This document shows, piece by piece, positions 5,845-44,535 of a DNA stretch of 64,000 nucleotides; position 1 is the first letter of the stretch; every line of letters begins with the position of its first letter. Under the pieces are notes generated by a model. The model saw nothing but the letters and a program-made list of their open reading frames with translations. It did not search any database and was not told the DNA's origin. The position numbers and the translations under genes were made by a program. The DNA lies in IMG/VR virus record IMGVR_UViG_3300025121_000282, positions 248,001 through 312,000 of that record; one strand, given 5' to 3'.

Positions 5845-5845
5845 G

Positions 5846-11474: not shown

Positions 11475-12374
11475 TTAGAGGTTCCCAACAGCAACCACAC
11501 CCCTACCAATGATACCGCCTAATTCATTTACTGTGTTTCCAATACCAGAAGTCTTGAAAGAATTAGGCACCCTAATCGATTGATCCAGCCTCGTGGTTCG
11601 ATGCACTGTAAAACTTGCACTATAGTCGACAACATGTGGCATGTCTGCTGTCTCATTTATCTGGAACTCTGAAAATCTACCACTGTACATAACACCATCA
11701 TAAAACATGTTTACATAACCAATTTTATACGGGATTCTCGAATCTCCAGCAGAATTGTTGGAAGGTACAGAACCATCCACATAAACATTTCCGTTAGACC
11801 GGTATACTGCCACCAAGCTTTGTAAATTTCTCCAGGCAGCTGATCCATTTCTATGTGATCGGGTCAAACCACCATACCCATCTGGGTCGACACACACGAA
11901 ACCACCAGTTTGACCGGATATCTTAATCTCGTCTAGGTTTTCGCCCCAGTGTTCTATTTTGTATTTTCTTGTGCGGGTCATTTGACCCTCAGTTCTAACT
12001 TTTGATAAAGCAAAATCCAGGGTGGATGGGTTTATCAACAACACCAAAGTGGGCAGTGCTTCTATGGCGTCTATAACATCATTCATGTTAGCGGGGACTG
12101 TGTTGTTGTTCCCTGTGTTGACAGCCTCTAGGTTTTCAGCCCTGGGATTTTTTGGCATAGATTTCCTGCCAAATCCACTATTGATGGCAGCTTTATTTAT
12201 ACCAACAGTTGACTCGGATACTGTAGACCTGGGCGGGGGCACCAATTTGAAAGCCATAGCGGCACTTTCAGTTCTGGAAGCGGCCACGGGCCTCATGGCT
12301 GTATTGAGCCATTTTATCCCAGAATTCTCAGGAACCGGGACATTTTCTAAAGTAAATGATGTACTGTCTGCCAT
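11475..12374 (-). CDS. Tail tube initiator/baseplate hub-like protein (paralog of 12378..12995)
   Basis: Shares LxxNPS...IEHWGE...I.G.TG...Y.G.F.EF...E.A.....DYS.SF.V with the adjacent upstream gene. Confidence 0.65.
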   Translation of the reverse strand: MADSTSFTLENVPVPENSGIKWLNTAMRPVAASRTESAAMAFKLVPPPRSTVSESTVGINKAAINSGFGRKSMPKNPRAENLEAVNTGNNNTVPANMNDVIDAIEALPTLVLLINPSTLDFALSKVRTEGQMTRTRKYKIEHWGENLDEIKISGQTGGFVCVDPDGYGGLTRSHRNGSAAWRNLQSLVAVYRSNGNVYVDGSVPSNNSAGDSRIPYKIGYVNMFYDGVMYSGRFSEFQINETADMPHVVDYSASFTVHRTTRLDQSIRVPNSFKTSGIGNTVNELGGIIGRGVVAVGNL

Positions 12375-12377
12375 GTC

Positions 12378-12995
12378 CTAAACCTGACTATTCGAGTACA
12401 CGGTTTGTATAACTATTTCCTCAACTTGAAAAGAAATAGAAAATGTAAACATATAAGGCCTAGAAGCATCCTCGGTCCATGTAAACTCATTAAAGAATCC
12501 GTCGTATACACCCTGGTCAAAAGCCACTCTAATTCTGCCTGCCATATAAACAGAGCCATTTTCATCACGAATCAGGCCATTGTTTCTGTATAAGTCCAAC
12601 AACCTTTTAAATTGATAGTTTGACAAAGTTTTGTGTCTAAGTGGGGCAGATTCATTGTTAAATGTGTGGGCAGACACCAACCCGTGCTCTACCGAAATAA
12701 ATGCTCCCGTACCGCTCTCTATTTGAAAGATTTGTAGAGATTCGCCCCAGGACTGCTCGATCCATGCGCCTTTGGTGTTGAATGAGTCTACAACTTTAGA
12801 CATCTGAGTACTAAACCCAGACGGGTTCACCCTCATATAAAGCGGGGGACTTACCACTGTAGTTAAATCTGGACCTATCACCCAAAATACAAAGGGAATC
12901 CAGTCCCCGTTGACAGGTTGATCAAGTCCACCCTCATACTGAGTGGAGAGAGACTGTCGGGGGGCTCCCCTTATACCATGTCTACCGATGGGCAT
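12378..12995 (-). CDS. Tail tube initiator/baseplate hub-like protein
   Basis: Motifs MRVNPS...IEQSWGE...YDGFFNEFTWTEDASRPYMFTFSISFQV; immediately after the tape measure gene. Confidence 0.65.
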   Translation of the reverse strand: MPIGRHGIRGAPRQSLSTQYEGGLDQPVNGDWIPFVFWVIGPDLTTVVSPPLYMRVNPSGFSTQMSKVVDSFNTKGAWIEQSWGESLQIFQIESGTGAFISVEHGLVSAHTFNNESAPLRHKTLSNYQFKRLLDLYRNNGLIRDENGSVYMAGRIRVAFDQGVYDGFFNEFTWTEDASRPYMFTFSISFQVEEIVIQTVYSNSQV

Positions 12996-16180: not shown

Positions 16181-17218
16181 TCACTTCCGCTGGCGTTGAC
16201 GCCAAGCTTCCATGATGACCGAAGGGGAAACGAGACTTTCCCTCTCAAATTTGGCTTTCTCGTCTGATAACCTACGATACTCATTCATTTGAGACAAAGT
16301 AAGTCCGAACGACTCTTCGTCCAATTTTACGGCTCCATCTGGAATACTCGGCCTACTAACCCTAGCCTGTTGAATAGTGCGGTCTTTCACAAATTCTTCA
16401 AAGTCTCTATTGTCGTCTTCAATCTTTTTTTCGTGCATTTCGATGGATAAGTCGTGTTCATCCTTTTCACCCTTTATCTGCTGCTGAAGCTGAGTACTAA
16501 GTTCATCTGTTGTTCTGGCTATTTTTAATTCATACCCGTCTTCTGTTGTTTCTATACCTTCCACGAGTCTCTGTCTTTTCTTATCTCTGTCTTTTTCTAT
16601 ACTTCTCTCGTGTTTTTCTAATTTTTCGACAAACTTGGGGCTATTAGTGGCAGCTACTAGTTTAGCTGCCTCGTTGTGCAGGTGTCGCTGGAATTCTTTA
16701 TCCTCGCGAGACATAATGCTTATCCATATGTATTGATAGTCGTTTAAGCCTATAAGGTCTGTGCCTGCCATCCCGGTTATTTTCGGGTCGTTGGGTAGGT
16801 GTCCCATCAACCCGGTCCAGTGCATGCTTGACGTCCCCGTGTACGAGTACGCTTCTACGTCTGTACCCAGGTCATTTGCTTTCTTGTTTAGTTCTATTAG
16901 CTGGCGTAATGCTATATTTATTGCGTGAGGAGGCCAATAACTTAAAGACTTGATTACTTTATGTAATTTGGGTCTTATTGGAAGTATGTTTATATCGTCG
17001 ATTACAAATATAGAATATGCTAAAAAAGCAAGTTCTTGATTTTTTAGAGATTGTATTACACCTCGCTCAAAAGAATTGATAGTTTTCCATACTACTCTAG
17101 AATCACCAAATTTACTTGGTGCTGTCAGGAACCCCTGCTGAATCAGGGTTGCTACTTGACTGAGTCTCTCCGCTCTCTGAAGCAGTCTCTGTTGGTGCAG
17201 TTGGTTCACTAGTGGCAC
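16181..17218 (-). CDS. Tail assembly chaperone-like protein (pre-tape-measure)
   Basis: 345 aa, GTG start, located between the first chaperone and the tape measure; overlaps the upstream gene by 107 nt. Confidence 0.55.
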   Translation of the reverse strand: MPLVNQLHQQRLLQRAERLSQVATLIQQGFLTAPSKFGDSRVVWKTINSFERGVIQSLKNQELAFLAYSIFVIDDINILPIRPKLHKVIKSLSYWPPHAINIALRQLIELNKKANDLGTDVEAYSYTGTSSMHWTGLMGHLPNDPKITGMAGTDLIGLNDYQYIWISIMSREDKEFQRHLHNEAAKLVAATNSPKFVEKLEKHERSIEKDRDKKRQRLVEGIETTEDGYELKIARTTDELSTQLQQQIKGEKDEHDLSIEMHEKKIEDDNRDFEEFVKDRTIQQARVSRPSIPDGAVKLDEESFGLTLSQMNEYRRLSDEKAKFERESLVSPSVIMEAWRQRQRK

Positions 17219-17714
17219 CCTGTCCCGGTACTCGTTCTTGAATAGCCCTTAAAGCTTCCAATTTAGACTCTAGTACAGAGATTTGTTCTGGGATGCCTAA
17301 GTTCTCATACTCCACACCAGCTATAGCCTCAAGTTCTACTTTTGCTTGTAAAACTTGGTATTGTTTGATCAAAGCGTTGATAAGAGACTCGTCCCACCCC
17401 TCATCGTCATGGCCAATGATGTTGTCTCTTAAATAGATGTTTACGGGGACTTTAGTGTCTGCGTCTATTTCTATATTTTTTAATTCTCTAAAGCTTATAC
17501 CATTAAGTTCTATAATGGCATTAGACAGCATTCCTATTTTATATCTACGAGTGTAGAGCAGACCGTCCATTTCTCCGGCCCACTCCATTATTTCTGCGTC
17601 TCTATTTCGTGTATAAACGCGGAAAACACCCGTGATAGCACCGTCCATGGCACTAAATTTGAGTGTTTTTCTACCTAAGGCTTTGAATTTGTCTAGAGAT
17701 TCTTTTATGCTCAT
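17112..17714 (-). CDS. Tail assembly chaperone
   Basis: 200 aa, directly after the tube gene; motif LSNAIIELNG. Confidence 0.6.
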   Translation of the reverse strand: MSIKESLDKFKALGRKTLKFSAMDGAITGVFRVYTRNRDAEIMEWAGEMDGLLYTRRYKIGMLSNAIIELNGISFRELKNIEIDADTKVPVNIYLRDNIIGHDDEGWDESLINALIKQYQVLQAKVELEAIAGVEYENLGIPEQISVLESKLEALRAIQERVPGQGATSEPTAPTETASESGETQSSSNPDSAGVPDSTK

Positions 17715-24197: not shown

Positions 24198-25019
24198 GTG
24201 GCAGTTATAATAGCAGATGGGCTAGAGTTCGATGGGATAGCTGTAAGCGGGGTCGGGTCTGCTATTTCAATTACCAATGTTGGTATTTGTTTAGACATCG
24301 GTACTGTCACCCCTGCTTCTCTAAAGTGCAATGTAGTACTAATAACCCATGGTCACATTGACCACATGTCAGGTCTCGTTTTGCATGCCAACATTCGGGC
24401 CATGCAGGGCAATAAGACAACCACTTACGTAGTGCCACCGTGGCTCGAACCCCAGGTCCATAGCTTGTTCAGTATTTGGGCAAAACTACAAGAAGAAAAC
24501 AGCGGTCCAAATGTGACAGTTATCGCACTTGAAGCTGGTAAGTCGGTCACGTTAAATCGACACAAAATAACAGCGTTTGCTACAAACCATAGAATTCCCA
24601 GTCAGGGTTACTTAATTTCTGAAGAAAGAAAGAAACTAAAGAAAGAGTTTGCTTATTTACCCGGAGACGAAATAGGCAGGATTAGCCGGTCCGGGGTTGA
24701 AGTTATAGACATCATAGAGCACAAGAGAATAGCTTATACAGGGGACACTAGGGCCAGCATATTTGACACTAATTCTGAAGCTGTAAATGCCGATGTCCTG
24801 ATCACTGAATCCACGTTCTTAGGGGACTTGACCAACGAGTTTGTAGAAGAGCGGGGACACACCCACGTGCGTCAAATAGCCGAAAGGTCCCATCTGTTTC
24901 ACAACAAAGCAGTAATACTGGTACACTTTTCGGCTAGGTATGACAACAAAATGATTGCAGAAGAAGTTGCCAAACTGGCAAAAATCTTCCCAGTTCCACT
25001 GCACTTTTTGCCAGTTTAG
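24198..25019 (+). CDS. rnz: Ribonuclease Z (short TM-type tRNase Z, metallo-beta-lactamase fold)
   Basis: THGHIDH, YTGDT, ITESTF, GHTH, LVHFSARY motifs, plus a KKLKKEF flexible-arm motif. Confidence 0.85.
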   Translation: MAVIIADGLEFDGIAVSGVGSAISITNVGICLDIGTVTPASLKCNVVLITHGHIDHMSGLVLHANIRAMQGNKTTTYVVPPWLEPQVHSLFSIWAKLQEENSGPNVTVIALEAGKSVTLNRHKITAFATNHRIPSQGYLISEERKKLKKEFAYLPGDEIGRISRSGVEVIDIIEHKRIAYTGDTRASIFDTNSEAVNADVLITESTFLGDLTNEFVEERGHTHVRQIAERSHLFHNKAVILVHFSARYDNKMIAEEVAKLAKIFPVPLHFLPV

Positions 25020-25150
25020 GCTTTGAAACCCAAGTTTTGTCATTATGTAACTGTCCATCTACTCCGTTACTTACACAATGGCGTGTTGTATGTCAATTGA
25101 CTAATTGAGCCTATGTGTGAAAAGTAGCCTGACTACATAAGAGAGTAAAA

Positions 25151-25681
25151 ATGAGAACACTTACAATAGAGCAGATAAGAGATATTGCCATACGCGCCCA
25201 CGGGACCCAAAAATACGGAGAAGACCCGTACTCAGTTCATCTGGACGCGGTAGTCTCTATGCTTGGCGAATTCGGCTTTGATTCATTTGAAGATAAAGCC
25301 GTTGGACTGCTACACGACACCGTAGAGGACACTGATCTCACCTCAGAAAAACTAATTAGGATCGGAGTCCCTATTGTTGTGGTGGATGGTGTTCTTTTTT
25401 GTACTGATGAGCCCGGGGTTAACCGCAAAACCAGAAAGCGCCTCACATATGCCAGAATTAAAAGTGTTATAGCTGCCTGCAGTGCATACGATTCAGTGTC
25501 TACAACAATAGGGGTTAGAGTTAAGTTGGCTGACAGGCTTGTAAATATTAAAAAATGTATGAAAGACAATCCGAAGCTTTTAGAAATGTACGTGTCTGAG
25601 CATCACGATTTTTGTAACACATACTACATGCCGGGTACAAACTACGCGATGTGGGAGCACTGCTCGAAGGTGTTTGACTAA
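25151..25681 (+). CDS. RelA/SpoT-type HD-domain hydrolase (Mesh1/small alarmone hydrolase-like)
   Basis: AHGTQKYGEDPYSVHL...LLHDTVEDT...VKLADRLVNI. Confidence 0.85.
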   Translation: MRTLTIEQIRDIAIRAHGTQKYGEDPYSVHLDAVVSMLGEFGFDSFEDKAVGLLHDTVEDTDLTSEKLIRIGVPIVVVDGVLFCTDEPGVNRKTRKRLTYARIKSVIAACSAYDSVSTTIGVRVKLADRLVNIKKCMKDNPKLLEMYVSEHHDFCNTYYMPGTNYAMWEHCSKVFD

Positions 25682-29987: not shown

Positions 29988-31082
29988 TTGACAATAGCAC
30001 AGACACCACGAAGTACCATTGTGGAACATAACCAAGAAATCTGTCTGGTAGTCGGTGGGCCGCAGAAGCGATGGCAATGGATTGTCGAGTATCTCTCCAA
30101 AAACACCGGTACTAAAATCAGAGTGTGTGAACAAGGCCGCTTTTCTTTTGGTCGTAAGATCATCAACTCTTATGTACTGGTATTAAAAGATTTAATCGAC
30201 CATAGATTCAAAAACGAGATTATTAAGTGCACTGGAACCGGATGTACACTTGTGTACTCAGACAGAACAAGACCGGGATTAATCAAGGCTTTTGAGATTA
30301 TGGGTATAAGTAGCCTAGGACTTACTAGTACACACTCTAAAGAGGACAAGGTGGACAAGGTGGACAACATTGTGTTTGGTACTGACATAAATGAGTTGGT
30401 GCACGCCATCGCCAGTGGTACGAGTTGGTCACGATTGCACACCAAGCTGGTGCTGGAGTCGAAAGTAAATGTGGAACAAACTCCATTTGTTGAACAAGTC
30501 ACCAAGTGCGCCAAAGCAAACTGTCTAAGTATACCCAAAAACCCGCCCAACAGGTCACAGCCAAAAACGAAGATTGACCCAGAATTCTACCCAAACCTAG
30601 TACCGGAGGTATTACGGATTAAGGCTACCAACTCATGGATAGACACATTTCGCATTTTATACAATTCTGGCGTGCTACACCCCGAATCCACACTGTCTGG
30701 ATTTACACAGGGGATCAGAGCCGCCATTGCTAAAACTCCGGGTACTACTGTTGAGACTACTAGTGCCACTGAGACTGTTGTTCCAGACAGACAGTACTCT
30801 GCCGTCGAGTACGACGAAGTCTTCAGTAAGTGGCACGAGGGGGAAGAGGCCCTCAAAGCTGCAAAAACTGAATTGGAAGAGAAATCAGCAGAGTTGCGCA
30901 CACTGGAGGGCAAATTTGCTGCAGTTTCCATAAACCTTCAGATGATGACTAATAGGCTGAATGTCGCACCCACAGGCACTAAGCACGACCCGATCTTTTT
31001 GAAAATGTTGGTCGCTTTGGAATCGTCTTGCACAGAGAGAGGCCCATTCCATGCTCTGTGCAAGACGATCTTGGAAGATTAG
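29988..31082 (+). CDS. Hypothetical protein with C-terminal coiled coil
   Basis: 364-aa ORF; start uncertain (the track start is the TTG of a TTGACA). Confidence 0.6.
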   Translation: MTIAQTPRSTIVEHNQEICLVVGGPQKRWQWIVEYLSKNTGTKIRVCEQGRFSFGRKIINSYVLVLKDLIDHRFKNEIIKCTGTGCTLVYSDRTRPGLIKAFEIMGISSLGLTSTHSKEDKVDKVDNIVFGTDINELVHAIASGTSWSRLHTKLVLESKVNVEQTPFVEQVTKCAKANCLSIPKNPPNRSQPKTKIDPEFYPNLVPEVLRIKATNSWIDTFRILYNSGVLHPESTLSGFTQGIRAAIAKTPGTTVETTSATETVVPDRQYSAVEYDEVFSKWHEGEEALKAAKTELEEKSAELRTLEGKFAAVSINLQMMTNRLNVAPTGTKHDPIFLKMLVALESSCTERGPFHALCKTILED

Positions 31083-31838: not shown

Positions 31839-32036
31839 TCATTTAGCCCAAAGGGCTGGGTTGTACTGTGTACCCCAGAGCGAGGACTCAGTAAGTGTAG
31901 TTGTCAAATTACGCACACGGATTACGTGTATCCAATTTGACACCAGTGTTGTGGGTTGCTGGTTGGTCTCACGTGCGTGGGTTACCAACCAATCAAGGTC
32001 TTCTTGTTCTATTCTTATTGAGAATATTTTCTTCAT
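31839..32036 (-). CDS. Ribbon-helix-helix (CopG/Arc-like) DNA-binding protein
   Basis: ATG at 32036 gives MKKIFSIRIEQEDLDWLVTHARETNQQPTTLVSNWI, a beta-strand + helix + helix pattern. Confidence 0.75.
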   Translation of the reverse strand: MKKIFSIRIEQEDLDWLVTHARETNQQPTTLVSNWIHVIRVRNLTTTLTESSLWGTQYNPALWAK

Positions 32037-32075
32037 GGCGTAATACACTATACAACAACGTATTACGCCACACAA
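32036..32075 (-). promoter_or_regulatory. Sigma70-like promoter overlapped by an 11-bp inverted-repeat operator
   Basis: -35 TTGTGT (32075-32070), 17 nt, -10 TATAGT (32052-32047). Inverted repeat TGGCGTAATAC (32036-32046) / GTATTACGCCA (32060-32070). Confidence 0.7.
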
Positions 32076-32078
32076 GTA

Positions 32079-33170
32079 CTACAGTATGTTTGCAGCCACG
32101 AGTTTTTGCAGTGTTTGTAAACTAACATTTTTGGCAAATACGTACGTATTAGACTTAGAGTTTTTAAATTTCACATAACTATTTGGGTTCTGTCTAATTT
32201 TCTCGAAGTTACCTGTTATTTTTCCATTCTCGTCTAAATGCACCCTGGAGTCTACGCCACTATTTGGGAACATAAATCCACCCAATGGTACTTTGGTCCA
32301 CTGGATTTTGTTTAACTGGTCTTCACTTAGGTTCTTAAGGTATATCTCTGTATCTCCACGTGCGTGTTGTACCCCATCTAGCACCAGACTGATTTCTTTG
32401 TTGGGGTCCTCCGTGACTATAGAGGACATTTTTCTTATAAAAGAACTTATTTTGCGAATCAAACTCCCGATGTGAATTCTGGACGAAGCACTTTCTAAGT
32501 CCTCAATGCTTAAATCGCTGGGGACTATAAGTGCTTGGTCTCTATGGTTGAACACTCTAAACTTAGATGAGTTTTTACTTATGGTGTCCATAACATGCAA
32601 AAATTTACTATTTGGACGGTCTGTTTTCCAGTCTGAAGAGCTTATCAAGTAAAATGTGTGTTTGGTATGGTCCAGCAGTTTCAGCACAGAGTCTATATTG
32701 TTGCTGTGTGTTTCGAGGTGCTCACTGAGTTTGACCTTAATTTCCTTATCTACAGGAAGTAAACTGTCTAAAGTTGCTATGTATGCAAGTACTTTTTGTC
32801 GTTGATTTTTGATCGCCTCGACCACTTCTGGCACATTTGCATACTCAACACCACCATACCGCCATCCGGATGGCTTGAAATGGGCGTTTGAGGGTGCCAG
32901 GACGACAGGTTTGCCATAAGCTATAGTCAGGTAAATCCCCCTAGTCTGCAACTGCAGGGGAGGCACTTCTAAATCGTTTTTGCCACATTCTTTTTGAAAT
33001 GCATCAATTTCGTTGCTGAAATCGGTAGATTTAGAAACAATAAGCCTAAGTTTAGTACTCAATGTCATCATACAGAAAGGTGTCCTTCCATCTTTAACAT
33101 TCGTCAACATTAAAGATGGACCGGTTATGTCACAACAATTTAAGTGACTCCATGGGCTGGTCTGTGGCAA
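32079..33170 (-). CDS. Hypothetical protein
   Basis: 363-aa ORF ending in TAG; true start probably downstream of the track start. Confidence 0.65.
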   Translation of the reverse strand: MPQTSPWSHLNCCDITGPSLMLTNVKDGRTPFCMMTLSTKLRLIVSKSTDFSNEIDAFQKECGKNDLEVPPLQLQTRGIYLTIAYGKPVVLAPSNAHFKPSGWRYGGVEYANVPEVVEAIKNQRQKVLAYIATLDSLLPVDKEIKVKLSEHLETHSNNIDSVLKLLDHTKHTFYLISSSDWKTDRPNSKFLHVMDTISKNSSKFRVFNHRDQALIVPSDLSIEDLESASSRIHIGSLIRKISSFIRKMSSIVTEDPNKEISLVLDGVQHARGDTEIYLKNLSEDQLNKIQWTKVPLGGFMFPNSGVDSRVHLDENGKITGNFEKIRQNPNSYVKFKNSKSNTYVFAKNVSLQTLQKLVAANIL

Positions 33171-35909: not shown

Positions 35910-36281
35910 TTACGTGGATGCGGACTTAATTTTGGTAGCTTCGATAAAGTCTATTTCTGTTCTCTCTATTCGTATAACTGGCACGCGCTGCTCTATTAGT
36001 TTGCCTACTGTGTAGGGGTCATACGGGACCAATGAAACAGCCTTACCAGCGTTGTCAAATTCTACTACAACATTTAGTCCACCAAATGTTGGATTTAGCC
36101 ACACTTCAGATTCGTATAAATGGTCGTACACGAAAAAGTGACTCGCATTGTGGATAGTAAGTGGCCTGTCCGATTTTGCACCCTTGGTTTGGACTAGAAC
36201 GTGTGCTGTTCTACCTTTCTTACTGCCACAATGCTCACATTTACCAAAATTTTTGGAAGTGAGAAGCTTGTGATCCGTCAT
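35910..36281 (-). CDS. Hypothetical protein
   Basis: 123 aa, ATGA-coupled to the upstream gene. Confidence 0.6.
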   Translation of the reverse strand: MTDHKLLTSKNFGKCEHCGSKKGRTAHVLVQTKGAKSDRPLTIHNASHFFVYDHLYESEVWLNPTFGGLNVVVEFDNAGKAVSLVPYDPYTVGKLIEQRVPVIRIERTEIDFIEATKIKSAST

Positions 36282-36586
36282 ATAATAATCCTTACGGTAA
36301 TGTCCGACTTAGCCAGCGGGTGTATTGGGTTTTTGGTAGGCACTATCACCGTGTCATTTAGCCATAAGATGGCTTCTGCGTGGCTTAAGTGTTGAGTTTC
36401 TGATGTTTTGTCAACTAAAGTCCAGAACTCTTCTTCTGGTATAACTATTTCTTCTAGTAGGCCGCAATACCCAGCAAAATTCATCCTGGTTTGCATAGCC
36501 CAAGCCAAACTAAAATAAAGTTTAGTTTTACCCTCAACTGTGAGCATGCGCTCACAAAGGGTGTCTATCTTTTGCATGTGTGTCAT
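36278..36586 (-). CDS. Hypothetical protein
   Basis: 102 aa; its SD (AAAGGA) directly follows the tRNA 3' end. Confidence 0.6.
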   Translation of the reverse strand: MTHMQKIDTLCERMLTVEGKTKLYFSLAWAMQTRMNFAGYCGLLEEIVIPEEEFWTLVDKTSETQHLSHAEAILWLNDTVIVPTKNPIHPLAKSDITVRIII

Positions 36587-36601
36587 ACATAGTCCTTTCG
36601 G

Positions 36602-36674
36602 TGCTCGCCCAGGGACTCGAACCCTGACCTGATCGATTTAGAGTCGACCCGCCTTGACATTTGGCCACACGAGC
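36602..36674 (-). tRNA. tRNA with CUA anticodon (amber suppressor type)
   Basis: GCTCGTG TG GCC AAATGTCAA GGC G GGTCGA CTCTAAA TCGATC AGGT CAGGG TTCGAGT CCCTG GGCGAGC A. Cloverleaf with a canonical T-arm and a C32 U33 CUA A37 A38 loop. Atypical points: G7.G66 mismatch, no D-loop GG, CCA not encoded (CCG). Confidence 0.85.
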
Positions 36675-36677
36675 GTG

Positions 36678-38213
36678 TTACTGTCTAAATAACACAAACT
36701 TTTTCTTTTCTTTACCAAACACTTTTACGTACCCTTTTGATTCAGCAAACTCCTTCTCTGTCATATGGCATCCAACGGCATGGTTGTATAAAGTCTTTTT
36801 GTGCATCATCCAACCAGTCGTGTCTACGTACACATAATCAGGCTTGGTAGTGGAAACATGTTCCCAATTTGAAGCTTGGTAGACGATGCCCTCATGGCCC
36901 ACGGTAGTATCGGCAAACGAAACTATTGCCTTGGTTTCTGGAAATTGGTCCCAGAAGTGTTTGGCCGATCTTGCTAAAAACCAAGACCCGAAATTAGGCT
37001 TGTGGCAGTCTGTTCTGATACAAAGTCTATCCAACTCCGACACTGTTTTTGGAGTAAGTCCTACTGAGGTGGACACCTCTTTTCTAACAACAGGAGCGAA
37101 CTTTGCCACTGCTATTAATTGGCCATCCAAGTAAGCCCCAAACATAAACTTTGCTTTACGACCACACTGGGCATAGTGCCAAGCTCTTAAAAATCTGTTA
37201 CCCTCAGAGTGCTCTATAGGCTTGACAATTAATTGGTTAAACTCGAATTCAGTTATTTTGGACTCGCTGACACCAATTACAGACTGAATTTTATCTTGAA
37301 CCAAATCAGGTATTAAAGTCTCATGCTCTTCTATACACAAAAGTAGTGAATCAGGGTTTGCAATTCTAAGATATGCTGATTTAGCAACGTCCCGCCTTTG
37401 GTTATTCGGAAGGTTGTGCCAATAATCACCTTGTACTTCAATGTATATATTAAAATCCGATAAATACAGGTCAAAATTATACGGACCCACAGATTTTTCT
37501 CTGGTGTATTTTATCTCAAGCAGGTCTAATACATCAGAAACCACTTTTTCAGGTTTAGACTGTCTGCCTGACCTAGAAAAGGCCTCTATACCAGCAGCTA
37601 TTTTAGCCCTGTACTCTGGATTTTTAAATCTTTCTTTTGCCAATTCACTGTGTATCTTTTTGTATTCTGGGTTCTGGATTGCCAAGTCATGGTTAGCTCT
37701 CGCCTCAGGCGTGTGCATTACTGACACTTTTTCCCTGAAGTATTTGTCTGGGTCGGCTTTATAATCCGCCTTGTTTCGTTCCGACACCAGCTGTTTATGC
37801 TGGTCTGACTGAAACATCTTGGTAATGCGGTCTTGCTGAAACTCCCTAAAATCTGGGTCTTCCCAAGCCTGTTTAGCTTGCTTAGACCTTTGGGCTCTGC
37901 CATCTTCAGAATTGGCTATGGCACCCAATATTTTTGACTGGTTGCTGACGTACTCTGGATTCGCCCAGGCTTGCTTGGATTGCTTAGACCTCTGAGCTTT
38001 TCCTTGAGGACTCTTAGCTCTGCACGGGGAACACCAGTATTCCCCGCGTTTTCTCAGAGTTCTATTTACAATAGACCTCTGATTGCATACAGACCTACCA
38101 CAACACTGATAGACTACCCACCCTCTTTGTTTAGGGGTGGGTAATCTATACCCAAAGTCTATTTCGTTGTGCTCTTGGTCGGAAATTTGTGCGTACAGTG
38201 TTGCTATATCCAT
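36678..38213 (-). CDS. Fusion: helical NUMOD-like repeats + DUF559/Vsr-like endonuclease + Mom-like GNAT domain
   Basis: KPEKVVSDVL...YNFDLYL....YIEVQGDYWH; C-term WHY...ELDRLC...SWFLARS...IVSFADTTVGHEGIVYQASNW. Confidence 0.75.
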   Translation of the reverse strand: MDIATLYAQISDQEHNEIDFGYRLPTPKQRGWVVYQCCGRSVCNQRSIVNRTLRKRGEYWCSPCRAKSPQGKAQRSKQSKQAWANPEYVSNQSKILGAIANSEDGRAQRSKQAKQAWEDPDFREFQQDRITKMFQSDQHKQLVSERNKADYKADPDKYFREKVSVMHTPEARANHDLAIQNPEYKKIHSELAKERFKNPEYRAKIAAGIEAFSRSGRQSKPEKVVSDVLDLLEIKYTREKSVGPYNFDLYLSDFNIYIEVQGDYWHNLPNNQRRDVAKSAYLRIANPDSLLLCIEEHETLIPDLVQDKIQSVIGVSESKITEFEFNQLIVKPIEHSEGNRFLRAWHYAQCGRKAKFMFGAYLDGQLIAVAKFAPVVRKEVSTSVGLTPKTVSELDRLCIRTDCHKPNFGSWFLARSAKHFWDQFPETKAIVSFADTTVGHEGIVYQASNWEHVSTTKPDYVYVDTTGWMMHKKTLYNHAVGCHMTEKEFAESKGYVKVFGKEKKKFVLFRQ

Positions 38214-38255: not shown

Positions 38256-40679
38256 CTAACCCAAGTACACGTAGTCATCATGGAGAGCGCTGGTACCAAC
38301 CATCACCACGGGAAGTCCTGAGCAATTTTCCAGCATATCAATAAACGCTCTGGTTTCAGAGCTAAACTTGACTAATGCCTCTTTGCCCCCGCGCAGACCG
38401 ACGTCGATGTGGTTGATTTGATTCACAAAATTCAGTACAAGCTTGGTTGCACCGCAGGTTCTAGCAGCGTCCTTAAGCCCAATTTGGGAGAATGTCCCTA
38501 CGCGTCGAATGCGCTTAGTAACCGTGGTTCGCTCGCGTTCCGCCAACATTTTTGCCTCTTCCTCTGGCATGTTGGCTCTCTTTGCTATCTCATCCCAGGT
38601 CAATTCCTGTTGGTCGGGGTACCACCCTCCAGAATTCCCCAGTTCTTTGCCAGACTCGTCATACACGTTTCCAACCCTAATTGGGTGCGACCTTAAGTTT
38701 AAGTAGACGTCGCCCACCATGTTTGGGGGAATGGCCATATAGTCCATGGCTGCCTGAACTGTGCAGTTTCTAGAAGTGCAGTTTGGATAGTGTGAGCCGT
38801 GGTCAATACTCAGTGCATAGCCCTGGCTTCCTTCATGGAGCCAGTAGTCACCCTTACTGATGATTTTGTGGGTGGCATCACGAAATGCCATGCCGTTGGT
38901 GATTTGAATGTTTCCAGGGAGGTCTATTGGTGCTGGTGTGTTACCAACCAGGGGCACATTCTGCTTCCGTAAAACCTTATCAGCCAGGGCGGTCCCGGAA
39001 CCCTGCATAGTGGAGGCTAGGTGCTTGGTGCTTTCTGCTCCCTCACGCTCTCGTGCAGCGTGGTCCTCGGTTACAATACCTGCACGATCATGAACATAAA
39101 GGTCTGGTCCACCACACTCCTCATACTCCTTGATGAACTGTTCCCAACGAAAAGATGAACCGGGAGAAATCCATCCAGCAACCTCACGGCCAAGTGCTTT
39201 CTTCAGACCGCATGCGGTGGGCAGAGCCTTGGCTACAAACTTCCCATCTTTCAAATTCGGGTGAGCAATAGTGTTGTGTGAAATAGCACCATTGGCTAGA
39301 TAACTGTGGGTTTGGGGCATGGTTACATCAAAAACCCGTTCTTCCCCAATTGCCAAATTGACTTCTTTGATGTCTACTACATGATAGTCCTCGGCCAATT
39401 TAACTAAGCCGGTAAATCCAGCCGCTCGGAGTGTGGCGGCATTGCGTAAAACATACGCACCTGCGATGGCTCCATTCTCAGTTGAATTCGTGCTGTGTGC
39501 AGCTTTGCGTATTTGAATCAAACGGTTATAATTGAGATTGATGAGAGAGCCTTGAGACCAATCAGCATCGTATGTGGCTATTTCCACATTTAATCTAGCC
39601 GACTTGACCTCTGAAAGAAAACCTACTCGCTCACGAAAAAGGGTTAAATTTTCCAAACCCGCCATCTCAATTTGATGTGATCGACTGCGAGAAGGTCGCT
39701 TGTCCTGGTAGGACCGGTAAGTGGAATTAATACCCAACAACAATAATAACTGTTGGGCCATCAGCACCACATCTTTTGAAATGTTGCCAAAAGAAACCCT
39801 TCGCTTTTTGGCCGACCCATCCGAGTCAAACAGACCCCGCAGAAATGCTCCAATTATTTCAGGGGTGCCCACAGTGACAGCAGTCGGTATCTCTTTTTCG
39901 GCTTTAGTAGCTAGCTTCAACCCCACTTGTTCAAAGATCTGGCGAAGTTCGGAAATACTGCAGGTTTCCAGAACGTGGCACTGTTTGTCTTTTACCTTGT
40001 AAACATTCCATGGGATGCCGATGCCATCGTAAAATTTTTGAGTCTTGCAGCAAACATCCATCTGGTCAGAGTGGAACGCTATGCTAACATTTGCCTTTTT
40101 GGGACTGTAACACCCATCACCAACCAACAGCCCCAGGTATTCAGCCATTAATAATTCGTCTGGTTTATTTGTCAGTGCGGTTCCATTCGCTCTGTGTATC
40201 AGGGATAACATGTCTATAGGTAGACTGGTTCCCACCCAGTTAGTCTTTTTAGGAAATAAAAACTGGTGTACTCCAGGTACTAAATCCATTGACCGTATCC
40301 ACTGTGGGGCGTTTTCAGTGGGGTCCCAAACATAGTACTGATGTATGTCAGTACATTTGTACTCAATGCCATTCTTGAGTTTGATTTTGTTGACTACTCT
40401 AACCCCGTCATCAACCAAATCTGTAGGCGACTCCCAACAGCCGTCCATGTTGAGAAGCTGCAGACCCTTTTGGTTCTGAGTGACAATATCCCCAAGCTTT
40501 TTTAATCCCCGGTCAGTGGGGATTATGGCGTCAAAAGTTTGACAGTGGCCTGCATTGGGATAGTTGGCAGAAGACACATTTCGGACATTGAAAATATCCA
40601 CCAAACGAGACGACAAAGCTCCCTTACCTGAGCTACCCCAGGCTTGGTCGAGGACAACATTGAACTTTCCAGGCTGCAT
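38256..40679 (-). CDS. purZ: Adenylosuccinate-synthetase homologue with PurZ signatures, interrupted by an intein
   Basis: GSSGKG (Ser in place of the PurA catalytic Asp), NAGH|T, ASTMQG, EGSQGY...YPNCTSR, RSHPIRVG, NSGGWYPDQ.ELTW, TTVTKRIRR, NFVN. Confidence 0.8.
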   Translation of the reverse strand: MQPGKFNVVLDQAWGSSGKGALSSRLVDIFNVRNVSSANYPNAGHCQTFDAIIPTDRGLKKLGDIVTQNQKGLQLLNMDGCWESPTDLVDDGVRVVNKIKLKNGIEYKCTDIHQYYVWDPTENAPQWIRSMDLVPGVHQFLFPKKTNWVGTSLPIDMLSLIHRANGTALTNKPDELLMAEYLGLLVGDGCYSPKKANVSIAFHSDQMDVCCKTQKFYDGIGIPWNVYKVKDKQCHVLETCSISELRQIFEQVGLKLATKAEKEIPTAVTVGTPEIIGAFLRGLFDSDGSAKKRRVSFGNISKDVVLMAQQLLLLLGINSTYRSYQDKRPSRSRSHQIEMAGLENLTLFRERVGFLSEVKSARLNVEIATYDADWSQGSLINLNYNRLIQIRKAAHSTNSTENGAIAGAYVLRNAATLRAAGFTGLVKLAEDYHVVDIKEVNLAIGEERVFDVTMPQTHSYLANGAISHNTIAHPNLKDGKFVAKALPTACGLKKALGREVAGWISPGSSFRWEQFIKEYEECGGPDLYVHDRAGIVTEDHAAREREGAESTKHLASTMQGSGTALADKVLRKQNVPLVGNTPAPIDLPGNIQITNGMAFRDATHKIISKGDYWLHEGSQGYALSIDHGSHYPNCTSRNCTVQAAMDYMAIPPNMVGDVYLNLRSHPIRVGNVYDESGKELGNSGGWYPDQQELTWDEIAKRANMPEEEAKMLAERERTTVTKRIRRVGTFSQIGLKDAARTCGATKLVLNFVNQINHIDVGLRGGKEALVKFSSETRAFIDMLENCSGLPVVMVGTSALHDDYVYLG
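39273..40544 (-). mobile_element. Intein (424 aa) with LAGLIDADG homing endonuclease
   Basis: Starts CQTFDAII, ends VFDVTM...HSYLANGAISHN, with Thr at +1. LAGLIDADG blocks YLGLLVGDG and FLRGLFDSDG. Confidence 0.95.
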
Positions 40680-40681
40680 GA

Positions 40682-42370
40682 CTAAACTCTCCTAACCCAC
40701 TTGGTTTTTGGCACCTCTGATACTGTACAGAGACCGGTATACTCTACAAACTGTCGTTCTGTCATATGGTTTGACAGTGCTTGATCATACACAGTACGTT
40801 TGTGTATGTATCTCACTGTGACTGGGTCAAAATAATGATACGATTCCCCGGTCTGGCCCGCTTCAATAAAACTACAGGCTTTGTACAAGCCACCAGAATC
40901 ACCAACATTGGGGTCAGAAAATGAAACCAGTAACTTTAGCTTTGGGCTTTCTGATTTATAGGCACCAATTAACTTAGACATACAGTAAGAAGATAGATTA
41001 TTCACATCCAGTCCAGACCTTACGCAAAACCGTCTAATCTCTCTGACACTACCTGGATTCAACTTACCCAGCCCCAGTTGCTCTGCGGTTTTTTTGACAG
41101 TTCCGTGTCGGGTTACACCACCAAATACCAGCAAACACACCAATGTGTCCTTAAAATAAGCCCCATAGGGAGAGGCTGCTGTCCCCAAAGTGCCCAAGTA
41201 ATGATTGGTGGTTAGAAACACGTGGGCTTCTTTTAACGGAACAGGTCTAAACTCCAAGTCCGACAACTGAAATTGTATTGGTTCTTCAATGGCTCGCAAA
41301 ATGTGATAGTCCAACACTTTACGAAGTCTTCCCAGATGCAGTTCATGCTCCCATAACCACACTAACTTATACTTTGAATACTTTTCTATGTATGTAGCTT
41401 TGGCCTTATCTCTGGGTGTTCCAGAGTACCCGTTGTCTTTAAAATTGTGAAGATAATCACCATGGGTCTCTATCAACAAATTGCATAATGGTACATAAAA
41501 ATCAAACGAGTATGGGCCCACCGTGAAACTGCGTTCGAATGGAACCTTATAGTGGGACTCCAAAATGGAGGCTACTATCCTTTCTGTAGTAGGGTTCTGT
41601 AATTTCTCTTTGACACCCGGGATGTCAAAACCAGATTCTGACCCGTATAATTTCAGTAAGGTAGTTCTGCGTTTAATGGCTTTACATTTGGCAGACCCAC
41701 AGGTTAACGGGTGGGCCTGGGTGTAATACGACATCTTGGTTTCAGAGGTATTGTCACACACATAACACTTATAAATTATGGTCTTTTCACACAGTGGGAA
41801 TATTTTCGTGGCCTTGTACCCAAATTTAACAAACGTGGCATCGTCATCAGCCCATGCATAGTCTGGGGGCTTTCGTTTCGACAACCAAAAGTCATGCTTA
41901 CTTTGTGTGGATTCTTCGCGAATCCAAGTAGCAGCCACAGGACTGCACAGTTTGCAGCACACTACTTTGTTGCTTCTGGATAGACTTTGCAAACTGGTAG
42001 TGTACTGCTCTAGGCAAAATTCACATACAGCTTCAACAGCTTTTTCTGACCTTGGAGACAGTGTGTCTAGGCCATACCCATGTTTGGCTATGGTCAACAA
42101 AGAGTCTGCCCCAGCGGGCCGTTTAAGTACACTTAATAAATAGTACTCTCTAGGTGTTGTTTGTTTCTGCCTTACCCAATGAGATTTTAACTGATCGCAG
42201 CCCGAACAGGCATCTGGCGGAACGCGTCCAGGTTTGGAAAACTGATATTTCTTCCTCTCAAACACTTCTAAACAGAAATCGCATTGCACCACTACAGGTT
42301 TCTTAGACTGTGGCGCTAAGTCACTGTACCGATATCCGTATTTCTCAACAGTCAAGTCATCTTGGTGCAT
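40682..42370 (-). CDS. Fusion: three CxxC zinc-ribbon repeats + DUF559/Vsr-like endonuclease + Mom-like GNAT domain
   Basis: Repeats (T.xKxGY...S.K.V...CxxC) x3; ERIVASIL...YSFDFYV....LIETHGDYLH; NHY...EIRRFC...LVSFSDPNVGDSGGLYKACSF. Likely start is the ATG at 42370, 6 nt after TATAAT. Confidence 0.75.
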   Translation of the reverse strand: MHQDDLTVEKYGYRYSDLAPQSKKPVVVQCDFCLEVFERKKYQFSKPGRVPPDACSGCDQLKSHWVRQKQTTPREYYLLSVLKRPAGADSLLTIAKHGYGLDTLSPRSEKAVEAVCEFCLEQYTTSLQSLSRSNKVVCCKLCSPVAATWIREESTQSKHDFWLSKRKPPDYAWADDDATFVKFGYKATKIFPLCEKTIIYKCYVCDNTSETKMSYYTQAHPLTCGSAKCKAIKRRTTLLKLYGSESGFDIPGVKEKLQNPTTERIVASILESHYKVPFERSFTVGPYSFDFYVPLCNLLIETHGDYLHNFKDNGYSGTPRDKAKATYIEKYSKYKLVWLWEHELHLGRLRKVLDYHILRAIEEPIQFQLSDLEFRPVPLKEAHVFLTTNHYLGTLGTAASPYGAYFKDTLVCLLVFGGVTRHGTVKKTAEQLGLGKLNPGSVREIRRFCVRSGLDVNNLSSYCMSKLIGAYKSESPKLKLLVSFSDPNVGDSGGLYKACSFIEAGQTGESYHYFDPVTVRYIHKRTVYDQALSNHMTERQFVEYTGLCTVSEVPKTKWVRRV

Positions 42371-42478
42371 ACCTGCATTATACACAAAAGTGTGGCACTA
42401 ACGGCAAGGGTGCTATACATTAAAAATTACTTCGTACTTGGTTGTACAATACCATCAGACCCACAACAGGAAGACACA

Positions 42479-43334: not shown

Positions 43335-43470
43335 GGGGCTCTCTCCATCTTTGTTGCGTAGACACTATTAATTTTACATTTGTGGGCCCCAAATAACAAC
43401 TCCTATGGTGCACTTCTAAATACAGATTGACAAGCAGGTGTGGTACACAAATTATTTGTTGGAGGGTTAC

Positions 43471-44535
43471 ATGTCTAATTTAGATTTCGATCTAGTAAAA
43501 CACACAATAGTCATGACGAGAGGTGGGTCTGTCTCTTATGGAATGGCTACGCCCACCTCGGATTTAGACATCAAGGGTATTTTTATACCCCCAGAAGAGT
43601 ATACCCTAGGGTTTTATCTAAATTGTGAAACCATCAATAAGAACGAGGATTTAGAACTGTTTAGACACTTGTTAAATCAAGATAGTCTCAGGTATGTTGA
43701 CAATGGCCTTGAGGGGTCTGTTTATTCATTAGTAAAATACTTATTCTTAGCCGCCAAGGGAAACCCAAACATACTGGAAGTACTGTTTTGCGAAGAGGAA
43801 GATGTAATACACACCTCTGAGGAGGGTGAGATTCTTCGTGAGCACAGAGGTCTATTTTTAACCCAAGTTGTTAGACACCAATACGTTAGATATGCAATGG
43901 CTCAACTTGAAGATATTAAACGGCACAAGTCGTATTTGCTTAACCCCATAAAAAACAAGCCCACCCGATCTGATTTTGGGCTACCTACCCAGCCTGCAAT
44001 TAAGAAACACAAACTCGGGCTAATTGAAGCTGCAATTAAAAAACAGACAGACAGAGGGTACACTAGAGACCAAGCATTAAAAATTTTGGTAACGTACCCT
44101 GAGTACGAGAAGGACTTAAGTACACCAAACTTTATTGCAAATCTAAATGGGGAGGCTGCTTATACCAGTGCCGCCACTACATACACACGTCAGCAGCTTC
44201 ATTGGGAAAATAGAAACGCAAAAAGGGCAGCATTAGAGGCAAAGTATGGATTTGATACTAAACACACCTCACATGTTGTTAGGCTACTAAAAACGGGGCA
44301 TGAGATTTTAACTCAAGGGAAGTTAACAGTCCGCAGACCAGATTTCGAGGAATTGTTGGCTATCCGTGCTGGCTCATGGAGTTATGAGGAAGTAATGACT
44401 TGGGCCAATGACATGGTAAGAAAAATAAATTATGACTCTTTGGATTCCCCAATTCCATTAGAGCCGGATATGGTGGCTATCAACAATTTGTGTGTAAGAT
44501 TACACAAGATGTTTTACAAAAAGTTGGGATTTTGA
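43471..44535 (+). CDS. RlaP/YcgL-like Pol-beta nucleotidyltransferase (RNA-repair associated family)
   Basis: GGSVSYGMATPTSDLDIKGIF, KGNPNILEVLF, FDTKHTSHVVRLL, LLAIRAGSW; SD GGAGG. Confidence 0.85.
   Translation: MSNLDFDLVKHTIVMTRGGSVSYGMATPTSDLDIKGIFIPPEEYTLGFYLNCETINKNEDLELFRHLLNQDSLRYVDNGLEGSVYSLVKYLFLAAKGNPNILEVLFCEEEDVIHTSEEGEILREHRGLFLTQVVRHQYVRYAMAQLEDIKRHKSYLLNPIKNKPTRSDFGLPTQPAIKKHKLGLIEAAIKKQTDRGYTRDQALKILVTYPEYEKDLSTPNFIANLNGEAAYTSAATTYTRQQLHWENRNAKRAALEAKYGFDTKHTSHVVRLLKTGHEILTQGKLTVRRPDFEELLAIRAGSWSYEEVMTWANDMVRKINYDSLDSPIPLEPDMVAINNLCVRLHKMFYKKLGF

Follow-up and report, generated by a model that had tools for sequence, protein, structure and literature searches.

Gene content of the locus

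The locus is an operon of DNA-modification genes in a 315-kb groundwater jumbo phage. It consists of two Mom-like genes on either side of a PurZ-like gene with an intein, followed on the same strand by a tRNA gene with a CUA anticodon and by a small ORF. The window analysed is the whole stretch of 64,000 nucleotides, positions 248,001 to 312,000 of IMG/VR record IMGVR_UViG_3300025121_000282. The features are collected in Table 1.

Table 1. Features of the tRNA locus and other regions of the window that were examined
Position	Strand	Feature	Supporting observations
36602..36674	-	tRNA gene, anticodon CUA, 73 nt (G1 to A73)	ARAGORN, called as 36600..36674; Rfam RF00005, 45.9 bits, gathering score 29, E 1.3e-6, full model 1-71; cloverleaf minimum-free-energy fold
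36600..36601	-	Encoded C74 and C75	Next base is G, so A76 must be added after 3' processing
36278..36586	-	ORF of 102 aa, ATG at 36586; SD AAGGA at 36593-36597 begins 4 nt after the encoded CC of the tRNA	No PHROG or Pfam hit; atlas search uninformative
36678..38213	-	Mom-like gene, 511 aa; Vsr/I-Bth0305I-like PD-(D/E)XK domain at about residues 219-311, Mom GNAT domain at 328-487; TAA stop 3 nt (cac) before G1 of the tRNA	Pfam PF25680, E 5e-28; PHROG 1384; PDB 8bv8 (Mom) and 3r3p
38256..40679	-	PurZ-like adenylosuccinate-synthetase homologue, 807 aa, interrupted by a LAGLIDADG intein; ends in TAG, then one codon, then TAA	Pfam Adenylsucc_synt, LAGLIDADG_3 and Intein_splicing; PHROG 1211; PDB 6fm1 (2e-25) and 7odx (2e-20), both phage PurZ, against 1e-5 for E. 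coli PurA (1ade)
40682..42385	-	Second Mom-like gene, 567 aa, first gene of the module; ends in TAG	Pfam PF25680, E 1.2e-18
32079..33170		Candidate TAG read-through, plus 80 codons	Rejected; the extension is a separate small RHH-like ORF
30587..30931 with 30170..30550		Candidate TAG-joined pair	Rejected; antisense to a + strand gene, with a non-protein-like translation
12378..12995 with 11475..12374		Candidate TAG-joined pair	Rejected; adjacent paralogues with their own ATG
1-6400		Apparent cluster of TAG-terminated small + strand ORFs	Artefact; the region is one giant minus-strand ORF that runs off the window
25151..25681		HD protein, considered as DatZ	Rejected; resembles (p)ppGpp/(p)ppApp hydrolases

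The tRNA gene

The tRNA is the only one found in the window. The first-pass annotation had placed a 73-nt amber tRNA at 36597-36680, and this observation is confirmed, although the true span lies slightly inside those limits. Each detail that it had listed is found in the sequence. The anticodon loop is CUCUAAA with seven nucleotides. The D-arm is GCCA/AGGC with an A13-A22 mismatch, and the D-loop AAUGUCA has no GG. G7-G66 is marked by Rfam as a non-standard pair, and one extra base after position 26 allows a 6-bp anticodon stem, which is also the stem in the minimum-free-energy fold. The CCA end is incomplete, and the SD and start codon of the next ORF follow directly. Of the conserved tertiary nucleotides U8, A14, U33 and GGUUCGAGU are present, while G18G19 are absent. 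The T-loop is a standard UUCGAGU. The T-stem pairs 49-65, 50-64 and 51-63 are C-G, A-U and G-C, with a ddG of 0.0 relative to the reference in the additive EF-Tu table (Table 2 of PMC3239215), which gives no sign of EF-Tu avoidance.

The description of the tRNA as similar to tRNA-Gln, a common source of amber suppressors, is only partly supported. Only the D-arm resembles tRNA-Gln, and the acceptor end (G1-C72, C2-G71, U3-A70, A73) is unlike Gln. Nucleotides 28-65 are closest to tRNA-Lys, with 33 of 38 matching Curtissbacteria tRNA-Lys(CUU/UUU) and an identical T-arm. The bacterial Gly identity set (G1-C72, C2-G71, G3-C70, U73, C35 and C36) is not present either, as positions 3-70 are U-A, the discriminator is A73 and positions 35-36 are U and A.

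The ARAGORN label "Pyl" only reflects the anticodon. The CUA anticodon, the possible 6-bp anticodon stem and the missing G18G19 agree with a pyrrolysine tRNA, but tRNA-Pyl has one base between the acceptor and D stems, a 5-nt D-loop, a 3-nt variable loop, no T-Psi-C and G73. Here there are two bases (U8, G9), a 7-9 nt D-loop, a 4-5 nt variable loop, a normal T-loop and A73, and no pylS or pylBCD-like hit was found among the annotated ORFs. This identity is therefore highly improbable.

No close homologue of the tRNA was found in GenBank phages. Matches to the anticodon arm in IMG/VR gave only unrelated tRNA(CUA) genes, some of them in other jumbo-phage contigs with the same anticodon arm, and none of those found is near a Mom gene. 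Searches of sequencing runs returned only DNA for this phage, with identical contigs from several groundwater samples and no variants.

Genetic code of the window

The window uses the standard code, as the first-pass annotation had stated. One ORF of at least 1950 codons and several of more than 1000 codons have no in-frame TAG, and the three in-frame pairs that could be joined by reading TAG as sense are explained otherwise (Table 1). No gene in the 64 kb, out of 315 kb, needs TAG as a sense codon, including structural, baseplate and holin-like genes, the class usually recoded. After removal of antisense artefacts, 8-9 of about 60 genes (about 14%) end in TAG, which matches the nine counted earlier. 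TAG is thus not depleted as a stop, unlike the pre-recoding state described by Borges et al. (bioRxiv 10.1101/2021.08.26.457843), and TAG stops show no excess of nearby back-up stops.

The tRNA is embedded between two ORFs of one strand with no room for its own promoter or terminator. In a scan for such signals promoter-like sites were at chance level and terminator-like sites somewhat above it, and none adjoins the tRNA.

The Mom-like and PurZ-like genes

The interpretation in the first-pass annotation, a regulatory or partial suppressor embedded in an mRNA of a phage that is not recoded, is partly supported. The embedding and the standard code agree with the data, whereas regulatory or partial suppression is an inference, and the identity of the flanking genes had not been recognized.

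The two Mom-like proteins score 98.5 and 68 bits against PF25680 (threshold 27.1). Both look active as judged from sequence, with the Mu residues H58, Y59, R111, S124, D149 and Y159 conserved, while R151 is replaced (Thr in the 511-aa protein; Thr or Asn in the two), as in 107 of 122 family members. Both paralogues of this phage have uniquely lost a near-invariant His-Pro next to the catalytic Arg (R-T and R-S), which is compatible with an altered co-substrate. The PurZ-like protein is closer to phage PurZ than to cellular PurA, its catalytic specificity being predicted from this similarity alone. The downstream small ORFs gave no family or fold lead.

The five closest relatives (46-52% identity) keep the Mom-PurZ module but have no tRNA within 10 kb. 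The tRNA is therefore dispensable for the module, and it was inserted in this phage lineage only.

tRNA-like genes near Mom-like genes

About 240 Mom-like gene clusters were surveyed. tRNA-like genes are rare near them, yet several abut Mom-like genes. In the survey of IMG/VR Mom-like loci (162 gene clusters at 90% identity, 2.4 Mb) only 10 distinct tRNA-like genes occur, but four abut the 3' end of the Mom gene, including the one in this window at +3 nt. Of the other loci, here given by their survey numbers, L117 has a tmRNA at +3 nt (Rfam 106 bits), followed by a terminator-like hairpin. L146 has a tRNA-Gly(UCC) at +24 nt, followed by a terminator-like hairpin and T-run, with the Gly acceptor set G1-C72, C2-G71, G3-C70, U73 and an aberrant C33. 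L207 has a convergent tRNA-Gly(ACC) at 0 nt with the same Gly acceptor set. A third tRNA-Gly lies two genes upstream of a Mom gene (L410). A tRNA-Gly(ACC) called by ARAGORN in L440 was not counted, because Rfam found nothing even at E up to 10. A scan with Mu Mom itself returned only near-identical Mu-like prophages and was uninformative.

The number of abutting cases expected from background tRNA density is 0.04, giving P(3 or more) = 1e-5. A conservative slot-based test gives P = 0.005, or 0.03 with this window excluded. The overall tRNA density near Mom genes is however no higher than background, and only the exact abutment is unusual.

In the L117 and L146 lineages, synteny of the Mom gene with its neighbours is conserved in relatives that lack the RNA gene, which shows that the RNA gene is the insertion and not Mom. 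In the L117 relatives the slot after Mom is variable and holds assorted small ORFs. Mom-like genes also sit directly beside tRNA clusters in the cultured cyanophage S-SSM7, where the gene SSSM7_282 lies 35 nt after the cluster, and in the metagenome contig L491, and 0.3-0.8 kb from tRNA genes in L482, L477 and L488.

Possible functions of the tRNA

Mu Mom has recently been shown to transfer glycine from Gly-tRNAGly to N6 of adenine in dsDNA, with discrimination by the tRNA 3' end plus the amino acid (PMC13219725). The preferred but tentative explanation is that the tRNA is a co-transcribed aminoacyl donor for the Mom-like enzymes. In this view it would be released from the polycistronic transcript by RNase P at the 5' end and by 3' trimming, its CCA end would be completed by a nucleotidyltransferase, and a host synthetase would charge it, with Lys or Gln as the best guesses. 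One or both Mom-like GNAT enzymes would then use it to modify adenine in phage DNA, or 2-aminoadenine if PurZ is active, by the same chemistry as Mu Mom. Co-transcription would supply donor and enzyme together, the CUA anticodon would keep the tRNA out of sense-codon decoding, and any amber read-through would be a side effect or a second use. The analysis itself establishes the tRNA, its position, the Mom and PurZ identities and the recurrence of tRNA-like genes at Mom-like 3' ends, whereas processing, charging and use as a donor are inferred. The lack of any need for amber suppression in the 64 kb agrees with this explanation, and dedicated donors have a precedent in Staphylococcus aureus. 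Against it, relatives keep the module without the tRNA, the tRNA looks fit for the ribosome, and because it lacks the Gly identity set the known Mom donor chemistry does not transfer directly. The variable slot after Mom, and the fact that tRNA clusters are accessory-gene hot spots, mean that the co-location could be non-functional.

An ordinary amber suppressor is nearly as likely. Once charged, most likely with Lys or Gln, it would compete with RF1 and give C-terminally extended isoforms of TAG-terminated genes, or decode in-frame TAGs in the roughly 250 kb outside the window, and its position behind Mom would be incidental. U33 and A37A38 in the anticodon loop and the average predicted EF-Tu affinity agree with this, and suppressor tRNAs are common in phages and occur in standard-code relatives of recoded phages (bioRxiv 10.1101/2021.08.26.457843). 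Two of the three genes upstream in the same operon end in TAG, and the TAG stop of 12378..12995 is followed after a single codon by its paralogue in the same frame, so that read-through would fuse the two. However, the TAG usage of the window speaks against a suppressor, the tRNA is, from its position, expressed with DNA-modification genes and not with late or lysis genes, and the recurrence of tRNA-like genes at Mom 3' ends is left unexplained. It is less likely that the tRNA is accessory cargo without a specific partner, a recent and possibly decaying insertion in a plastic, recombination-prone slot where tRNA, tmRNA and Mom-like genes (with their homing-endonuclease-like Vsr domain) accumulate. 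Its absence from all relatives, its atypical features, its modest score compared with 52-68 bits for the other phage tRNAs scored, the intein and endonuclease-like domains of the module, the varied ORFs after Mom in L117 relatives and the short Mom genes in tRNA clusters of mixed isotypes would fit. On the other hand the sequence is identical between samples, all helices are intact and the loop is canonical, Mom synteny is conserved around the inserted RNA genes, and abutment at 0-24 nt in four lineages, with two or three of the partners being tRNA-Gly, the known Mom co-substrate, is hard to get by chance. A role mainly as a cis-acting RNase P site, which separates the Mom-like mRNA from the downstream small ORFs and sets their relative stability or translation, is very unlikely. 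The tRNA lies 3 nt after a stop codon and 4 nt before the next SD, with no promoter or terminator signal above chance nearby, the 3-nt spacing recurs for the tmRNA in L117, and RNase P processing of tRNA-mRNA co-transcripts is established in E. coli and T4. But processing follows from any embedded tRNA and does not explain the CUA anticodon or the intact anticodon arm, and in L146 and L117 the RNA gene is followed by a terminator, so nothing downstream needs to be separated.

A wider hypothesis, less likely than not on present evidence, is that large phages repeatedly recruit their own aminoacylatable RNAs directly behind Mom-family genes, as dedicated, co-transcribed acyl donors for DNA hypermodification. 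These would be the amber-anticodon tRNA here, tRNA-Gly variants with aberrant anticodon loops and possibly a tmRNA, a viral counterpart of the staphylococcal non-proteogenic tRNAs, and in this phage the modified base may be 2-aminoadenine made by the linked PurZ. Phage tRNAs are normally read as tools for translation, such as codon supply, recoding or defence evasion, and the finding that Mom uses charged tRNA dates only from 2023-2026. A phage-encoded tRNA wired into a Mom operon would be the first sign that viruses carry tRNAs for DNA chemistry. It would predict new aminoacyl-derived purine modifications, possibly on a Z-genome, and give a simple genomic marker for them, a Mom gene followed by a tRNA. 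If the tRNA is instead a plain suppressor, it is an example of one kept in a genome that still uses TAG freely as a stop, which bears on models of how recoding begins.

Comparison with known systems

The amber suppressor tRNAs of stop-codon-recoded phages (crAss-like, Lak, Agate and others; Borges et al., bioRxiv 10.1101/2021.08.26.457843) are also phage-borne, with a CUA anticodon and a canonical loop. Here, in addition to the differences in TAG usage, there is no release factor or aaRS "code-change module" nearby, and the tRNA is not next to lysis or structural genes. Mu encodes no tRNA and its Mom uses any host tRNAGly (PMC13219725), while the enzymes here, with six of seven key residues kept, are fused to a Vsr-like nuclease domain, have lost the His-Pro after R111 and are linked to PurZ, and the tRNA is not Gly-like.

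The non-proteogenic tRNAGly species of S. aureus, used by the Fem transferases FmhB, FemA and FemB (PMC7826273), serve aminoacyl-transferases outside translation and have deviations in the D and T arms; the window tRNA also lacks G18G19. Those tRNAs bind EF-Tu poorly, in contrast to the affinity predicted here, keep a Gly anticodon and are cellular rather than viral. The tRNA genes co-transcribed with mRNAs in the E. coli thrU-tyrU-glyT-thrT-tufB operon and in the T4 tRNA region are likewise embedded in a polycistronic transcript and released by RNase P and 3' processing, but they decode sense codons and have no enzyme partner that consumes them.

The tRNA gene

ARAGORN identified exactly one tRNA in the 64-kb window, with anticodon CTA, and the Rfam tRNA model matched the same locus with 45.9 bits (gathering score 29, E 1.3e-6) over the whole model. 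The minimum-free-energy fold is a cloverleaf. The first-pass annotation, which described a tRNA with an amber anticodon embedded in an mRNA, is correct as an observation, and each of the structural details it listed was found in the sequence. The tRNA starts 3 nt after the TAA stop of the upstream ORF, the anticodon loop is CUCUAAA, the D-arm is GCCA/AGGC with no GG in the D-loop, G7-G66 is a mismatch, and one extra base after position 26 allows a 6-bp anticodon stem. A73, C74 and C75 are encoded and are followed by G, and the Shine-Dalgarno sequence AAGGA and the ATG of the next ORF follow directly. The Pyl label given by ARAGORN is only a name for the anticodon, and the hallmarks of tRNAPyl are not present. 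The interpretation in the first-pass annotation was partly supported: its statement that the window is not amber-recoded holds, but the proposed resemblance to tRNA-Gln is restricted to the D-arm, and the annotation, made from the sequence alone, could not take the identity of the neighbouring genes into account.

Coordinates of the features described in the text
Sequence	Position	Strand	Feature
Window	1-5850	minus	Single ORF of at least 1950 codons, running off the left end of the window
Window	11475-12995	minus	Two adjacent paralogous genes in the same frame
Window	16181..17218 and 17112..17714	minus	Two ORFs overlapping in different frames
Window	24198-25681	plus	Metallo-beta-lactamase-fold hydrolase followed by a small HD protein
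Window	31839-32075	minus	Small ORF, translation resembling a ribbon-helix-helix protein
Window	36278..36586		ORF directly downstream of the tRNA
Window	36600..36674	minus	tRNA(CUA), ARAGORN
Window	36602..36674	minus	tRNA(CUA), Rfam
Window	36610-36647		Part of the tRNA compared with tRNA-Lys of Candidatus Curtissbacteria
Window	36678..38213	minus	Mom-like gene, 511 aa
Window	38256..40679	minus	PurZ-like adenylosuccinate-synthetase homologue with a LAGLIDADG intein
Window	40682..42385	minus	Mom-like gene, 567 aa
Window	43438-44535	plus	RlaP-type (RNA-repair-associated) Pol-beta nucleotidyltransferase
L117	5637-5975		tmRNA (tag ANDNAVRVAA)
L146	5577-5647		tRNA-Gly(UCC)
L207	4297-4368		tRNA-Gly(ACC)
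L494 (halovirus HGTV-1)	3881-4843		Mom-like gene, two genes from an RNA ligase
GU071098 (cyanophage S-SSM7)	216423-217395 (= L496 2604-3576)		Short Mom-like gene beside a tRNA cluster

Stop codon usage

A crude gene call suggested many TAG stops at the left end of the window. This region is however a single long ORF with no stop of any kind, and the small plus-strand ORFs called there are antisense artefacts. After correction, 8-9 of about 60 genes end in TAG and no long gene contains an in-frame TAG. Three ORF pairs would merge if TAG were read as sense, but all three are explained otherwise. In one of these cases the apparent gap after 32079..33170 is filled by a small ORF whose translation looks like a ribbon-helix-helix (Arc/CopG-type) protein. 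In another, two adjacent paralogous genes (31% identity) are separated only by TAG plus one codon, and amber read-through would fuse them into a protein of about 505 aa. The part of the genome examined, 64 of 315 kb, includes baseplate, tail-fibre, virion and holin-like genes, which are the classes that recoded phages usually recode.

Genomic context

The window covers positions 248001-312000 of a 314,886-bp jumbo phage (IMG/VR contig 3300025121_000282), which is present with identical sequence in several groundwater metagenomes and has no megablast match in GenBank phages. The tRNA is the fourth element of a minus-strand module comprising a Mom-like gene, a PurZ-like gene split by an intein with a LAGLIDADG homing endonuclease, a second Mom-like gene and the tRNA. 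The Mom-like proteins combine a Vsr/I-Bth0305I-like nuclease-fold domain with a C-terminal Mom GNAT domain. In an alignment of 122 family members with Mu Mom, residues H58, Y59, R111, S124, D149 and Y159 are essentially invariant, while R151 is Thr in most members.

Mu Mom transfers glycine from Gly-tRNAGly to N6 of adenine in double-stranded DNA (Silva et al., Nat Commun 2026, PMC13219725; preprint 10.1101/2023.03.24.534169). All three E. coli tRNAGly isoacceptors work but Gly-tRNAAla does not, so the enzyme reads the acceptor end of the tRNA together with the amino acid. Phage-encoded tRNAs, suppressors and PurZ are not mentioned in that paper, and a literature search for PurZ together with Mom found nothing relevant.

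Conservation of the linkage between tRNA and Mom

The linkage is not conserved among close relatives. The nearest homologues of the 511-aa protein in a collection of 5.8 billion proteins are 46-52% identical. In four of their contigs (L094, L097, L098 and L101) the Mom-like gene is next to a PurZ-like gene, and a fifth (L100) has the full trio of Mom, PurZ with intein and Mom. The PurZ gene of L101 also carries an intein. Mom-like genes of this subfamily are thus adjacent to a PurZ-like gene in 5 of the 5 closest relatives, which suggests that Mom-type modification is coupled to the 2-aminoadenine (Z-base) pathway. None of these contigs has a tRNA within 10 kb according to ARAGORN or Rfam, and more distant IMG/VR relatives also lack it. 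The tRNA is therefore a lineage-specific addition to a pre-existing module.

A wider survey showed a recurring pattern. Loci with a Mom domain were collected from IMG/VR and analysed with an HMM of the Mom domain, ARAGORN and clustering at 90%, giving 162 distinct Mom-like gene clusters in 2.4 Mb. Only 10 distinct tRNA-like genes lie in these loci, and four of them abut the 3' end of the Mom ORF.

tRNA-like genes abutting the 3' end of a Mom-like ORF (L numbers are loci of the survey)
Locus	RNA gene	Distance from Mom stop	Strand	Rfam	Notes
This window	tRNA(CUA)	+3 nt	same	45.9 bits	followed directly by the next ORF
L117 and copies	tmRNA	+3 nt	same	106 bits	followed by a terminator-like hairpin
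L146 and copies	tRNA-Gly(UCC)	+24 nt	same	55.5 bits	followed by a terminator-like hairpin and T-run
L207	tRNA-Gly(ACC)	0 nt	convergent	38.6 bits	

Both tRNA-Gly genes carry the bacterial Gly acceptor set G1-C72, C2-G71, G3-C70 and U73. The L146 tRNA has C33 instead of U33, and its self-complementary loop can close to 3 nt. A third tRNA-Gly lies two genes upstream of a Mom gene (locus L410), while the remaining five tRNAs lie 1.4-4.7 kb away. One further tRNA-Gly(ACC), in locus L440, was called by ARAGORN only and was not counted.

The tRNA density in 770 kb of unrelated viral loci is 0.009 per kb, which predicts 0.04 abutting cases among 158 Mom genes and gives P(3 or more) = 1e-5. A conservative test, asking only whether a tRNA that is present falls in the one intergenic slot after Mom, gave P = 0.005, or 0.03 when the discovery case was excluded. 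The overall tRNA density around Mom genes is however not raised, and only the abutment is unusual. In the L117 and L146 lineages the Mom gene keeps its neighbours (a 220-aa and an 885-aa protein in L117, the tail sheath in L146) in relatives that lack the RNA gene. The RNA gene is therefore the inserted element, not Mom. In relatives of L117 the slot after Mom holds assorted small ORFs, so it is a variable region.

A metagenome scan added short Mom-like genes inside or beside tRNA clusters in four contigs (L491, L482, L477 and L488), and in the cultured T4-like cyanophage S-SSM7 the Mom-like gene starts 35 nt after a four-tRNA cluster. tRNA clusters are, however, accessory-gene hot spots. Listeria phage LP-125 and halovirus HGTV-1 have no tRNA near their Mom-like genes. 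The Mom-like gene of HGTV-1 is near an RNA ligase and the RlaP-type nucleotidyltransferase of the window lies 1 kb from the module, which may indicate a wider link between Mom genes and genes for tRNA repair or maturation.

Predicted function in translation and amino acid identity

No feature of the tRNA shows that it cannot work on the ribosome. The loop is a canonical 7-mer with U33 and A37A38, and the three T-stem pairs that set EF-Tu affinity (C49-G65, A50-U64 and G51-C63) sum to ddG 0 in the additive table of Schrader and Uhlenbeck (PMC3239215), corresponding to average predicted affinity. This differs from the staphylococcal non-proteogenic tRNAGly, which avoid EF-Tu (PMC7826273). The missing G18G19, the G7-G66 mismatch and the extra base at position 26 are the only oddities.

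The sequence gives mixed indications of the amino acid. The D-arm resembles tRNA-Gln but the acceptor end does not, and nucleotides 28-65 match tRNA-Lys best. BLAST hits go to phage tRNA-Lys, and a co-occurring tRNA-Lys(CUU/UUU) of Candidatus Curtissbacteria, from the same kind of groundwater samples (loci L103-L109), matches at 33 of 38 positions, with an identical T-arm and a similar anticodon arm whose loop differs only at position 36. The 5' half is unrelated, and the similarity may be due to chance or to a chimeric origin. With U35 and A73, Lys is plausible. Mischarging of CUA tRNAs with Gln is well known. The tRNA is not Gly-like.

Possible roles of the tRNA

Two readings are close. The one ranked first, although only tentatively and with less than even confidence, is that the tRNA is functionally tied to the Mom-like enzymes as a co-transcribed aminoacyl donor. 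The reasons are the biochemical precedent, the recurrence of tRNA-like genes, especially tRNA-Gly, at the 3' ends of Mom genes, and the lack of any visible need for suppression in the window. A further hint is that both Mom paralogues of this phage, which belong to different subclades, have uniquely lost a near-invariant His-Pro 4-5 residues after the catalytic Arg (Mu R111). The dipeptides are instead R-T and R-S, each seen once among about 440 Mom domains, while the nearest relatives have H-P or R-P. The tRNA, its position, the Mom-like and PurZ-like identities of its neighbours and the recurrent abutment were established from sequence, while processing and charging of the tRNA and its use as a donor are inferred.

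A conventional amber suppressor is nearly as likely, and incidental cargo or a role in transcript processing are less probable alternatives. The readings are not exclusive, since a CUA tRNA used as a donor would also compete with RF1. Phage suppressor tRNAs and tRNA-dependent Mom chemistry are each known, but their physical coupling is not described in the literature searched, and neither are the conserved Mom-PurZ module and the tRNA or tmRNA genes behind Mom genes.

Other features of the window

The small HD protein that follows the metallo-beta-lactamase-fold hydrolase resembles (p)ppGpp/(p)ppApp hydrolases rather than DatZ. Upstream of the large tail and baseplate genes, two ORFs overlap by about 107 nt in different frames, an arrangement in which a programmed frameshift is one possibility.
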